Shown here: positions 441 to 50,207 of the stretch, piece by piece | Numbering within the stretch: position 1 is the stretch's first letter | How the letters are laid out: every line of letters starts with the position of its first letter | DNA from: Mobula hypostoma | Taxonomy: Eukaryota | Assembly (NCBI RefSeq): GCF_963921235.1 | Contig: NC_086119.1 | Location: forward strand, 24,242,001-24,306,000 | DNA: 64,000 nt | Direction of reading: 5' to 3' | Position numbers and translations under genes: made by a program | The notes under the pieces: generated by a model | What the model was told of the DNA's origin: nothing | The model's input: the letters and a program-made list of their open reading frames with translations, nothing else | Databases searched by the model: none

Positions 441-2275
441 GATAGCACAGTAGCACAGCAGTTAGCATAACGCTGTTACAGCGCCAGATATCCGGGTTCA
501 ATTCCGCAGCTGCAAGGTGTTTGCACGTTCCCCCTGTGACTGCACGGGTTTCATCCGGATGCTCCGGTTTCTCTGGAGTGCACCCTCGTGTTCTGGAGGA
601 AGTAGCTGTGGAGATTGCGGAGGCATTAGCGATGATCTTTCAAAAGTCGATAGATTCTGGCATGGTTCCGGAAGACAGGAAGATTGCAAATGTCACTCCG
701 CTATTTAAGAAGGGGGCAAGGAAGCAAAAAGGAAATTATAGACCTGTTAGTTTGACGTCGGTGGTTGGGAAGTTGTTGGAGTCGATTGTCAAGGATGAGG
801 TTACAGAGTACCTGGAGGCATATGACAAGATAGGCAGAACTCAGCATGGATTCCCTAAAGGAAAATCCTGCCTGACAAACCTATTACAATTTTTTGAGGA
901 AATTACCAGTAGGCTAGACAAGGGAGATGCAGTGGATGTTGTATATTTGGATTTTCAGAAGGCCTTTGACAAGGTGCCACACATGAGGCTTCTTAACTAG
1001 ATAAGAGCCCATGGAATTACGGGAAAGTTACATACGTGGATAGAGTGTTGGCTGATTGGCAGGAAACAGGGAGTGGGAATAAAGGGATCCTATTCTGGTT
1101 GGCTGCTAGTTACCAGTGGTGTTCCACAGGGATCAGTGTTGGGGCCGCTTCTTTTTACATTGTACATCCACGATTTGGATTATGGAATAGATGGCTTTGT
1201 GGCTAAGTTTGCTGACGATACGAAGATAGGTGGAGGGGCCGGTAGTGCTGAGGAAACGGAGAGTCTGCAGAGAGACTTGGATAGACTGGAAGAATGGGCA
1301 GAGAAGTGGCAAATGAAGTACAATGTTGGAAAGTGTATGGTTATGCACATTGGCAGAAAAAATAAACCGGCAGACTATTATTTAAATGGGGAAAGAATTC
1401 AAAGTTCTGAGATGCAACGGGACTTGGGAGTCCTCGTACAGGATTCCCTTAAAGTTAACCTCCAGGTTGAGTCAGTAGTGAAGAAGGCGAATGCAATGTT
1501 GGCATTCATTTCTAGAGGAAAAGAGTATAGGAGCAGGGATGTGATGTTGAGGTTCTATAAGGCACTGGTGAGACCTCACTTGGAGTACTGTGGGCAGTTT
1601 TGGTCTCCTTATTTAAGAAAGGATGTGCTGACGTTGGAGAGGGTACAGAGAAGATTCACTAGAATGATTCCGGGAATGAGAGCGTTAACATATGAGGAAC
1701 GTTTGTCCACTCTTGGACTGTATTCCTTGGAGTTTAGAAGAATGAGGGGAGACCTCATAGAAACATTTCGAATGTTAAAAGGCATGGACAGAGTGTTTCC
1801 CATGATGGGGGAGTCTAGTACAAGAGGGCATGACTTCAGGATTGAAGGGCGCCCTTTCAGAACAGAAATGCAAAGAAATTTTTTTAGTCAGAGGGTGGTG
1901 AATCCATGGAATTTGTTGCCACGGGCAGCAGTGGAGGCCAAGTCATTGGGTGTATTTAAGGCAGAGATTGATAGGTATCTGAGTAGCCAGGGCATCAAAG
2001 GTTATGGTGAGAAGGCGGGGCAGTGGAACTAAATAGGATAAAATGGATCAGCTCATGACAAAATGGCAGAGCAGACTCGATGGGCCGAATGGCCTACTTC
2101 TGCTCCTTTGTCTTATGGTCTCCTCCCACATTTCAAAACCATATAGTTAGGGTTAGTGAGTTGTAGGCATGCTCTGTTAGTAGGGGGCTGACCAACACAA
2201 TCCTCACTGATTTGATGCAAATGACACATTTCACTCTATGTTTTGAGGTACATGTGACAAATAAAGCTGGTCTTT
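441..2275 (+). mobile_element. tRNA-derived V-SINE (HE1-like) split by the CR1 insertion (441-570 and 2122-2275)
   Basis: B-box GGTTCAATTCC at ~495; the V-core ...GCTCCGGTTT|CCTCCCACA... is rejoined across the LINE. Confidence 0.75.
574..2121 (+). mobile_element. 5'-truncated CR1-clade LINE (ORF2 reverse transcriptase to 3' tail), young copy
   Basis: ORFs 521..1000 and 1073..2032 are in one frame, split by a single TAG. Motifs NYRPVSLTS, YLDFQKAFDKV, GVPQGSVLGP and KFADDTK are present; ends in a TCTTATGGTC tail. Confidence 0.95.
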
Positions 2276-42243: not shown

Positions 42244-42460
42244 AACACACATCAAAGTTGCTGGTGAATGCAACAGGCCAGGCAGCATCTCTAGGAAGAG
42301 GTACAGTCGACGTTTCGGGCCGATAGTCCTGACGAAGGGTCTCAGCCCGAAACGTCGACTGTACCTCTTCCTAGAGATGCTGCCTGGCCTGCTGTGTTCA
42401 CCAGCAACTTTGATGTGTGTTGCTTGAATTTCAAGCATCTGCAGAATTCCTTGTGTTTAC
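42244..42460 (+). mobile_element. 217-bp Penelope-like terminal hairpin with 15-bp TSD
   Basis: TSD GAGAAAAGAGCATGG (42229-42243 / 42461-42475); ~80-bp inverted arms at 42244-42323 and 42342-42421. Confidence 0.9.
42325..42360 (+). ncRNA. Minimal type-I hammerhead ribozyme motif
   Basis: AGTC-CTGACGA-AGGGTCTCAGCCC-GAAAC-GTC-GACT: stem I, CUGANGA, stem II, GAAA, palindromic ACGU stem III and a GUC cleavage triplet. Confidence 0.75.
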
Positions 42461-43084: not shown

Positions 43085-43545
43085 TGTACTGTCATTTGCT
43101 CCTGTCTTCAAGAAAGGAGACAAGTTTGACTGCAGTAATTACAAAGAAGTCTTCCTGCTGTCTGCTATATGGAACATCATCACAACCATCCTTTTCAACC
43201 TCCTCCTCCTAGTGACTGTGGCACTCCTCTCAGGGAAGCAATGAGAATAACGTCAATCAGAGGATATAGTGTACATGATTTCCACTGTACATGAACAGCC
43301 AGAAAATTTGCACAGAGCACTACCAGACCTTGCAAAAGCCGCCGACTCCAATCATTGAGATAAATTATGAAGACTTCTTCTCAAATTTGGCTGCCCTCAG
43401 AAACATGTTACCATTCTACAGTATGTACTACATGTTATGCAAGCTGTGACATTAACCAGGGGGTCCACAGACCCAGTGTGCCGACTGGGGTCAAGCAAGG
43501 TGGCTTCATTATACCAAACCGCTTCTCAATCATTCCTGTTGTTAT
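43085..43545 (+). mobile_element. Degenerate RTE (BovB-like) LINE RT fragment
   Basis: FKKGDKFDCSNY..LLS, LKFGCPQK and TGVKQG remnants. Confidence 0.75.
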
Positions 43546-47062: not shown

Positions 47063-47756
47063 CTATAGCTGCAGACAGGCTGAGAAAGGCAAGGAGGGAC
47101 TAGCTGACTCTTGTCAAAGTCATATGGGATTTTACTTGAAATTTTGTTACAGAACTTTTCTTTTTATGGCCCAGGTGGAAAACTGATTGAAGAGATTCAA
47201 GTATAGCATTCTGAGATAGTTTGGGAGATATCAGCATTGAAAAACCGGAGAGAAAGGGAAGCTATAGACAACTCACTGGCCTCTAAAGCATAATGGTTAA
47301 GAGATAATATTTTGACGATGTAAGATTTGATGATGGAAGAGCAATACGTGAAGATATAGAACCTTTAACATTATTGTGGATGTGAGGAAGAAAGACAATG
47401 AATGGTTATAAATTTATCCAATATTTGAACTGTGGGTTAGAGTTGGGCACGGTTATTCGATTGTGCTGTGAAAAGGAAGGAACTGACTTAGACCATAAAT
47501 CCCTATGGTCTCAGTATTTGAAACAAGTAGGCCCACTTACTCGATGGATCAAATAGCCTAATTCTGCTCCTATATCTTATGGTCTTATGCGAGGTATGAG
47601 ATCAAAAAAGCTGGGTTTGAGAAGACAGCAACAGAGAAAACAAGTTACCTTTGCATTCCAAGCCCATCCTTCTGAGTATTTCCCTTGCAAAAAAAAGAAT
47701 TTGATGAAGTCAAAGCCAGGAAAATGATTAAGGTATTGGTTTTAATAGACATCAAA

Positions 47757-48029
47757 AACTCTGCCATGGATGGTCCCAAGCCCACCTGCAAGAAAGGGAG
47801 AGTTGAGTATGGAGCTAGCAACCCCATCCTGCAAAAAACCATGAGCTACATAAATGCCAACTGAAACTCCAAAAACTTCATTCCTGGGAGAGGCAGGATC
47901 TTTATATGGAAGATGTATGAAGTTGTGTGGTGAAAATGGATGCTCAATATCCGGCCCAAGACAGAAGGCTCTGGAGAGCTGCTATCAGCAGCCTATGCCC
48001 TAGTAGGGATGATGGCTTAGCAAGAAGTA
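47757..48029 (+). mobile_element. ~275-bp non-autonomous RTE-derived retroposon with a twister-like 5' end
   Basis: 13-bp TSD AGACATCAAAAAC / AGATGTCAAAAAC (47747-47759 / 48030-48042). 5' end AACTCTGCC..GGTCCCAAGCCC; 3' end is an RTE-like TGGAGAGCTGCT..GCCTATGCCC...AAGAAGTA tail. Confidence 0.75.
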
Positions 48030-48164
48030 AGATGTCAAAAACAATTCTGAGTGTGTAGTTGAGCAGTATAATAGCTGCTGATATGTTTTGGTGGATGGAG
48101 GATCAAATACTGTACATTTAGTGTTTTGAAAGTACAATTGAAAGTGAATCCACCCTAACACCAT

Positions 48165-48323
48165 TCAGCAGGCCAGGCAGCATCTCTAGGAAGAGGTACA
48201 GTCGACGTCTCGGCCCGAAACGTCGACTATACCTCTTCCTAGAGATGCTGCCTGGCCTGCTGAGTTCACCAGCAACTTTTATGTGTGTTGCCTGAAATCC
48301 CAGCATCTGCAGATTTCCTCGTG
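48165..48323 (+). mobile_element. Penelope-like terminal hairpin (hammerhead CUGANGA missing)
   Basis: ~43-bp inverted arms around CTCGGCCCGAA; same family as 42244. Confidence 0.85.
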
Positions 48324-49417
48324 CCACTGTCTTTAACTTGGAATTCATATATCGCACAGTGCAAGTCAGAAGCACGTTGGAGATCAGAAGTAATGATTTT
48401 CCATTGCACCTTACACCTTGGCTGGAATGCAATTAGTGTCCTTCTTTGAATGGAACCAATGATCTTCACTAAAGGTAAACATAAAGGTAAGATTAAATTG
48501 TTTTTATTTTTGGTTTGTTTTCCTCATTTATGTTTGAAATAATTAACATGAATGAGATTTTAAATAACTATAATTTTACTGTCTTAAATTAATTTTGGTA
48601 AACTTCCTTATTTTAATCTTGATCAACAGTTTGTAAGTGTTTATGAATATCAGAGACATTTACAAAGGTCAAAATGGCTTTGGAACTGTCACAGGCTCTC
48701 AGGTAATCCAGTCGTGGGGAGTTTAGATTCTGCTGCCTGATGCCAAAGCATTGCTCATGGTCTGCCATGCCTCACAGAACTAGAGAACTCTAGCATTGCT
48801 CATCCATGGTATCACAGCAGGTAAGTGCAGCACTGGGAAGAAGGCACGGGGCGAATGTTGCTGGTGATTCAGACTGAGCACAAGACAGACTATTATAGCT
48901 GCAATCTCGCATTTATGTGGATTAAGAAAATGCTAGTTCCACACAAAAAAAATCACGGGAACTACTAATTAAACTAGACGATTAATTTATTCAATTTGGC
49001 CCATAGTTTCTGATTATGCTAATACTGAGACTCTCAGCTTTTGCCTTTTTTTCCCTCTGAAATGCAGAAACAGTTTCTGGCACATGTATATTCTACTCCT
49101 ACAGAGGATGCCTCCACTCATGCAACTGAAGTAAGATGGATTTGTGTAGCACCTCTTCCAGCTACCAATATGTTTTGCAGCCAATTTTGATGTGTTAGAA
49201 GTCAGTCACATTAATTTACCTATCTGAATAATCCCTACATTTGGCTATTTTATTTCAAACTTTTGGAACCTATGTTATTTTGCTCAAAGGGTCACTATTT
49301 AAATATAACTCATTGTTGATCCCTGGTCTACACTGAATTGGTGAAACCAAGTGAGAAAGCTAAGAGATGTCATAATTGCCCCAAATTTGACGTTTGGAAA
49401 AAGTTAATGTAGGACAC

Positions 49418-50207
49418 TCAAGTCAAATCAAGTCACTTTTATTGTCATTTCGACCATAACTGCTGGTACTGTACACAGTAAAAACGAGACAACATTTTTC
49501 AGACCATGGTGCTACATGAAACAATACAAAAACTACACTGGACTACGTAAAACAACAGAAAAACTACACTAGACTACAGACCTACCCAGGACTGCATAAA
49601 GTGTACAAAACAATGCAGGCATTACAATAACTAATAAACAAGACAATAGGCACAGTAGAGGGCAGTAGGTTGGTGTCAGTCCAGGCTCTGGGTATTAAGG
49701 AGTCTGATGGTTTGAGGGAAGAAATTATTACATAGTCTGGATGTGAGAGCCTGAATGCTTCGGTGCCTTTTGCCAGATGGCAGGAGGGAGAAGAGTTTGT
49801 ATGAGGGGTGCGTGGGTCCTTCATAATGCTGTTTGCTTTACGAATGCAGCGTGTGGTGTAAATATCTGTAATGGCGAGAAGAGAGACCCCAATGACCTCA
49901 GCTGACCTCACTATCCGCTGCAGGGTCTTGTGATCCGAGATGGTGCAATTTGCAGACCAGGCAATGATGCAGCTGCTCAGGATGCTCTCAATACAACCTC
50001 TGTAGAATGTGGTGAGGATGGGGGGTGGGAGATGGACTTTTCTCAACCTTCGCAGAAAGTAGAGACGCTGCTGGGCTTTCTTTGCTATGGCGCTGGTGTT
50101 GAGGGACCAGGTGAGATTCTCCGCCAGGTGAAGACCAAGAAATTTGGTGCTCTTAACGATCTCTATGGAGGAGTTGTTGATGTTCAGTAGAGAGTGGTTG
50201 CTCCGTG
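49418..50207 (-). mobile_element. Rex1/Babar-like LINE 3' portion
   Basis: ORF 49582..50046 LPPPILTTFYRGCIESILSSCIIAW...LQRIVRSAE; minus-strand AATAAA and GACTT-type repeat tail. Confidence 0.85.

Follow-up and report, generated by a model that had tools for sequence, protein, structure and literature searches.

A probable relic of an internally deleted, twister-headed RTE retroposon in the genome of Mobula hypostoma

Why should a short, repeat-flanked insert in the genome of a ray begin at the very letters before which a twister ribozyme would cut its RNA? We analysed a window of 64,000 nucleotides from Mobula hypostoma (the whole stretch of DNA under study, to which all positions refer), in which a first-pass annotation had proposed a mini RTE retroposon whose 5′ end maps to a twister cleavage site. 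The best explanation, which we consider highly probable together with the mechanism set out below, is that 47757-48029 represents an old copy, no longer active, of a non-coding element that derives by internal deletion from a Perere-3/Rex3-like RTE LINE, the parent RNA of which would have carried a P3-less twister at its extreme 5′ end.

The retroposon copy occupies 273 bases of the window (47757-48029, + strand) between two copies of a 13-bp target-site duplication (TSD), both of which were located (Table 1) and which, as first described, differ only by CA versus TG (11 of 13 positions match), a difference that could be explained by two decays of one ancestral CpG. Every sequence that the first-pass annotation had given for the insert start, the hairpin, the GAGAG and the 3′ tail is present. 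From 47757 the opening letters are AACTCTGCCATGGATGGTCCCAAGCCC; read from the end of the TSD the insert begins (AAC)TCTGCCATGGATGGTCCCAAGCCC, and since the final AAC of the 5′ TSD copy can equally be read as the first three bases of the element, the overlap noted earlier is real and leaves the position of the 5′ junction uncertain by 0-3 nt. The 3′ end of the element reads ...GCAAGAAGTA and adjoins the second TSD copy. Repeats with 11 of 13 matches at the spacing of the TSD are not rare by themselves, 38 pairs being found in about 1.3 million comparisons (16 kb), and we estimate the chance of a TSD-like repeat at the few placements permitted by fixed element ends at about 1e-3. The duplication carries weight because it is placed at the ends of a multi-copy stretch and at the start of a covariance-model match, both of which are described below.

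Table 1 Features of the retroposon copy and of LINE remnants in the window
Feature	Position	Strand	Letters or basis
5′ TSD copy	47748-47760	+	AGACATCAAAAAC
3′ TSD copy	48030-48042	+	AGATGTCAAAAAC
Decayed P3-less twister core	47757-47806	+	twister-P1 25.2 bits; R1 68.6 bits; family majority letters
Predicted twister cleavage site	between 47756 and 47757	+	twister-P1 alignment
Twister P2	47759-47762 with 47794-47797	+	
Twister L2 loop GCC	47763-47765	+	
Twister P4	47770-47772 with 47783-47785	+	
Twister L4 loop	47773-47782	+	motif GGUCCCAAGCCC (47772-47783) intact
Twister L1, GAGAG (consensus GAGGG)	47798-47802	+	
Twister P1 3′ strand, UUGA	47803-47806	+	
Hairpin immediately 3′ of twister, 7-nt CUAGCAA loop	47805-47830	+	conserved and covarying in relatives
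Hairpin letters	47809-47827	+	ATGGAGCTAGCAACCCCAT
Remaining RTE 5′UTR	47831-47916	+	GCAAAAAACC...GCTAC...; collinear with full-length relatives
ORF-start remnant (first 9 codons), MKLCGENGC	47917-47943	+	N-termini of relatives MTLCGESRK, MKPGGESRK, MTLCSENQG
Internal deletion junction	~47944-47953	+	directly behind ORF-start remnant
Remnant of last 26 codons of RTE ORF	47954-48031	+	AQDRRLWRAAISSLCPSRDDGLARSK; aligns to RTE C-termini
3′ tail, single GTAA unit	48024-48031	+	GAAGTAAG; last two bases overlap TSD
RVT_1 ORFs of LINE remnant (521-2032)	521-997 and 1073-2029	+	22-27 % identity to twister-RTE proteins
LINE remnant, weak RT match	43110-43531	+	
LINE remnant ORF, ALKBH8_N-like match	49585-50046	-	

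The element retains about 160 nt of 5′UTR, the first 9 and last 26 codons of an RTE ORF and one GTAA unit, and runs collinear with full-length relatives over their first ~190 nt. Its 3′ end, originally called RTE-like, corresponds to the C-terminus of the same RTE lineage, the translated remnant aligning to the last ~20 residues in 98 of 120 RTE proteins at identities of up to 67-73 %. About 2.9 kb of the ORF is gone and the start and end remnants are out of frame, so that the element is non-coding; the ORF for the APE endonuclease and reverse transcriptase is absent save for the 9 N-terminal and 26 C-terminal codons, which makes this copy a derivative rather than an autonomous RTE member. Protein searches with the ORF tail (a word search with 44 aa, and 37 aa against 1.84 billion representatives) returned no match, the queries probably being too short to be informative on absence. 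Neither blastn nor covariance model R1 found a second copy in the 64-kb window, which also holds no autonomous partner. The reverse transcriptase of the window itself (563-1723) was considered for that role and rejected, its 22-27 % identity to twister-RTE proteins placing it in another LINE clade.

Two further repeats lie close to the insert. A palindromic repeat at 48169-48325 is extremely abundant, its contig depths adding up to millions. Two related species (organisms A and B) have it at this site and the orthologous contig of a third (organism C) lacks it, so that it is a younger insertion; with CGAAAC...GTC near its apex it resembles a Penelope-like hairpin at 42244-42460. Upstream, 47505-47627 is a fragment of another extremely abundant repeat, and thousands of contig ends at 47587-47589 mark the 3′ end of that family.

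The twister identity of the head was examined by covariance models. At Rfam gathering thresholds there was no match in the whole window and none over 14 relatives. A permissive search of 47600-48150 (551 nt) with 4227 families nevertheless placed twister-P1 (RF03160) first, with 25.2 bits and an E-value of 0.0044, under the gathering cut-off of 67.2 bits. The alignment spans model positions 1-68 with P3 deleted and with a 4-bp P1 whose 5′ strand lies in the flank, where UCAA (47752-47755, inside the 5′ TSD copy) is able to pair with UUGA (47803-47806). Intact P3-less relatives scored 37.5-44 bits and P3-bearing ones 62.6-68.1 (L004 reaching 68.1); as the intact P3-less relatives are also below threshold, the Rfam cut-off misses the whole architecture in which P3 is lacking and P1 is supplied by the flank. 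The window copy lies 12-19 bits under these relatives, as expected of a decayed copy. Of its conserved twister letters AA, GCC and the 12-nt L4 motif are unaltered, and GAGGG is replaced by GAGAG.

A metagenome search with the pattern AACTCYGCC-N(0-30)-GGTCCCAAGCCC yielded 120 loci (L001-L120), many of which share an identical 6- or 7-nt linker instead of P3 and the same sequence downstream of the ribozyme. Sixteen of these relatives, with the window copy excluded, were aligned (A1), and the structure tested comprised P2, P4 and the 3′ hairpin. Cells of the alignment were paired in 97.3 % of cases against 44-56 % with slid partners, and double-sided changes were counted for 9 pairs, where the slid controls had 0-2, the covariation being carried by P4 (double-sided change in 3 of 4 pairs) and the hairpin, with P2 almost invariant among relatives. 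Model R1, built from A1, gave a sole match over the 64-kb window at 47757-47840 on the + strand (68.6 bits, E-value 2.4e-16), gap-free over model positions 1-84. On the metagenome loci it scored 90-112 bits for training members and 73-80 bits for whole-module relatives outside the training set (L098, L087, L026, L060).

That the twister likeness arose by chance, the insert being an ordinary 5′-truncated RTE tail, is a reading that could draw on the lack of any window match at the Rfam gathering score and on the 12-mer GGTCCCAAGCCC, which with at most one mismatch turns up one or more times in 20 of 100 shuffled versions of the window. The E-value to a twister-plus-hairpin model made from the elements of other organisms refutes it, as does the collinearity with nt 1-190 of full-length elements, by which the insert is not 5′-truncated, and the majority letters of the family shift toward the twister consensus; we give this reading practically no credence. 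On the sequence comparisons the twister resemblance is beyond chance, and the homology of the head, from AAC onward, to the twister-plus-hairpin module of its relatives, as judged by R1, is not in doubt. The head thus has the twister identity first assigned to it, being homologous to the twister heads of full-length RTE elements.

In 155 same-lineage pairs of metagenome relatives from different loci, identity is ~1.0 from position +1 on and 0.21-0.40 at -1 to -10, where the search pattern itself fixes the first 9 positions and the upstream drop is independent of it. Flanks are otherwise unrelated, with T preceding the cleavage-site AA (position -1) in 45 of 78 non-redundant twister heads; this could reflect a target preference of the endonuclease or a better survival of canonical U^AA copies.

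The hairpin that follows the twister (A1 columns 52-77; loop CYAGCAA) has double-sided change in 6 of 9 pairs and is common to P3-less and P3-bearing twister-RTE heads (L026, L060, L087); we found no discussion of a hairpin behind the twister P1 3′ strand in the available part of the paper on Perere-3 (PMC8501958). Other P3-less twister heads (L019, L028, L080, L099, L009, L027 and more) make up a second large group with a different downstream sequence, GGGTTAATGGATGACTAGGGCCCTGTGGAGGCAC.... Since an RTE-type ORF end follows 3.2-3.6 kb behind the head in L028 and L095, this is another twister-headed RTE lineage.

Full-length relatives place the same head at nucleotide 1 of RTE elements of 3.2 kb. 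In L048 and L073 it precedes ORFs of 1031 and 1029 aa respectively, both with Exo_endo_phos, RVT_1 and DUF6451 domains. The head of L048 is the first base of its contig and its ORF end, ...AEDRGAWRTLVGGLCPSGGNRRK, runs into a long (GTAA)n; the tail of L073 is (GAGT)n, against the one GTAA unit which makes up the 3′ repeat of the window copy. Several further loci have an RTE-type ORF end (D-R-x-x-W-R/K) 3.1-3.6 kb downstream of the twister. In another metagenome sample, L042 is a collinear mini element with its junction 32 nt off that of the window.

Compared with annotated Schistosoma proteins rather than with the Perere-3 reference, the L048 protein shows 67-70 % identity. Over the wider set of hosts, which comprises Schistosoma, gastropods (Littorina, Batillaria), amphioxus, bichir, lungfish, loaches and a goby, identities span 60-74 %. 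This unusually high identity across phyla suggests a horizontal spread of the L048 RTE lineage. Two matches labelled as bacterial MAGs probably reflect host contamination.

To establish whether the insert belongs to a family, contigs from sequencing runs of three related species were placed on 47300-48500 at 80 % likeness. In the flanks, which are single-copy in the contigs of all three species, contig depth was 5-15. It climbed to ~300-2000 in bins 47751-48037 alone, where each listed position had ~50-90 distinct contigs per species. The unit is thus multi-copy in the contigs of three species, in keeping with the twister-bearing non-autonomous RTE family proposed at first. All three organisms have the insertion itself at the orthologous position, and it is therefore older than their split. 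Five 5′ ends of paralogs are visible, four at 47757 (three pieces and one joint, in which the end of another repeat is linked directly to 47757) and one at 47755. Four of these five ends thus lie, like the start of the R1 match, at the AAC that was taken to open the predicted 3′ cleavage product.

Run X18 (organism A, RNA by guess) showed family contigs at a depth of 100-1000 over 47751-48037 with zero in the flanks, and shorter joined forms (47784>47969, 47837>47977); this signal may stem from family transcripts or from DNA carry-over.

Within the element there is a dip in depth at 47915-47955, to ~300, and contigs with other internal joints occur, which indicates that the family contains several deletion forms and that the junction is not uniform. 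Such heterogeneity would also be expected if the window held a one-off, internally deleted copy of an autonomous RTE, the deletion having arisen during or after insertion, rather than a member of a self-amplifying mini family: the depth of the junction bin (47915-47955) is about a quarter of head depth, several paralog pieces end at 47935-47940, internal joints are found at 47784>47969, 47788>47909 and 47837>47977, and the L042 junction differs by 32 nt from that of the window. All element bins, the junction bin included, nevertheless lie at 20-300 times flank depth in the three species, so that the arrangement itself is repeated, and L042 provides a collinear mini element from another source. 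A one-off deletion is on these grounds unlikely, and a repeatedly copied mini element is the reading we prefer.

The letters of the family also indicate how far this copy has decayed. The family is described here by majority letters at single positions and not by a consensus; these differ from the window copy at a minimum of 19 listed positions over 273 nt (at least 7 % divergence). At 47801 the majority has G in place of A, turning GAGAG into GAGGG, so that the family possesses all core letters and the window copy does not, and the GAGAG is confirmed as a decayed GAGGG. G in place of A at 47806 turns UUGA into UUGG and adds one hairpin pair, the same change at 47813 adds another, and at 47795 it is found in about half of the depth and adds one P2 pair. 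Four pairs are broken in the window copy, one in P2, one in P4 (47770 with 47785) and two in the hairpin (A at 47806 and A at 47813); three of these four are intact in the family majority, with 47770-47785 falling outside the listed letters. Since GAGGG and three of the pairs lost here reappear in the majority letters, the window copy is dead.

A ribozyme at this locus that is still active, or one co-opted by the host, is very improbable. The flank does supply a 4-bp P1, UCAA with UUGA, and the insertion has been retained in three species, which is the expectation for a neutral old insertion too. Set against these are the G to A change in the core GAGGG, the loss of one P2, one P4 and two hairpin pairs, and no fewer than 19 positions off the family majority over 273 nt. 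To judge from its letters, then, the window copy is a dead repeat and not a working ribozyme or host device.

How the family may have spread can be considered by comparison with known systems. Liu et al. (2021) described a T-variant twister at the 5′ end of Perere-3, an RTE-clade element of Schistosoma mansoni, as the first-pass annotation had stated, and this variant cleaves in vitro and in reporters; TSDs adjoin the AA, the TSD gives the P1 5′ strand, and GTAA repeats are found at the element end (PMC8501958). The authors mention unnamed vertebrate hits. The window element shares with Perere-3 a twister at the extreme 5′ end, a TSD beside the cleavage-site AA, a P1 5′ strand supplied by the flank and the core AACUCYGCC...GGUCCCAAGCCC...GGAGGAGGGUUGG; its full-length relative L048 likewise ends in GTAA repeats, with an RTE protein 67-70 % identical to Schistosoma proteins. 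Unlike Perere-3, the window element resides in a vertebrate, has P3 replaced by a 6-nt linker and a longer P4, and amounts to 273 bp of non-coding sequence left by deletion, with neither APE nor RT; this copy is dead.

Two further systems are discussed or cited in the same paper (PMC8501958). HDV-like ribozymes head R2, RTE and other LINEs, where self-cleavage of the RNA likewise determines at which base a read-through LINE transcript begins; they differ from the window twister in having the double-pseudoknot HDV fold, which cuts at its own first base. The eel SINE/LINE pair (Kajikawa and Okada 2002) comprises a non-autonomous retroposon that borrows the 3′ end of its partner. Like the eel SINE, the window element is short and non-coding and keeps the 3′ end of a partner LINE, so that mobilisation in trans may be expected by analogy; in contrast to it, the head is the LINE's own ribozyme-bearing 5′UTR in place of a pol III promoter of tRNA, 5S or 7SL type.

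By analogy with these systems, and with cleavage and trans mobilisation both inferred, we propose the following for the mini element. A read-through transcript would be predicted to cleave itself 5′ of the AA, after the mechanism published for Perere-3 (PMC8501958), such that the RNA entering reverse transcription would begin AACUC.... RTE proteins supplied in trans would recognise the retained 3′ end and prime on the nicked target, copying the processed RNA by target-primed reverse transcription. The new copy would then start at the cleavage site, gain a flanking TSD and take the 5′ strand of P1 from the flank, and the 3-nt AAC common to element and target would fit microhomology at the 5′ junction.

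The partnership of twister and RTE element, and its mechanism, is already published for blood flukes; our literature search on twister ribozymes in sharks or vertebrate RTE elements found no description in cartilaginous fishes or as a mini element. For the locus itself the practical meaning is modest, as it is a dead repeat. More broadly, a mechanism experimentally shown only in Schistosoma is here extended both to the genome of a vertebrate and to a short derivative that no longer codes for protein, and a curated Rfam cut-off is seen to overlook a whole class of P3-less twisters. We tentatively suggest, as a possibility that is on balance doubtful, that the P3-less twister and its covarying hairpin belong together as one conserved module at the 5′ end of a particular RTE lineage, in which protein identities of 60-74 % between flukes, snails, amphioxus and fishes would point to horizontal spread. 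Joined to the LINE tail, this module alone may in rays have given rise to a non-autonomous family that is processed by its ribozyme, has no pol III promoter and could in some species be active to this day. The hairpin would in that case be required in cis, for instance in cap-independent translation or in capturing the P1 3′ strand once cleavage has occurred.
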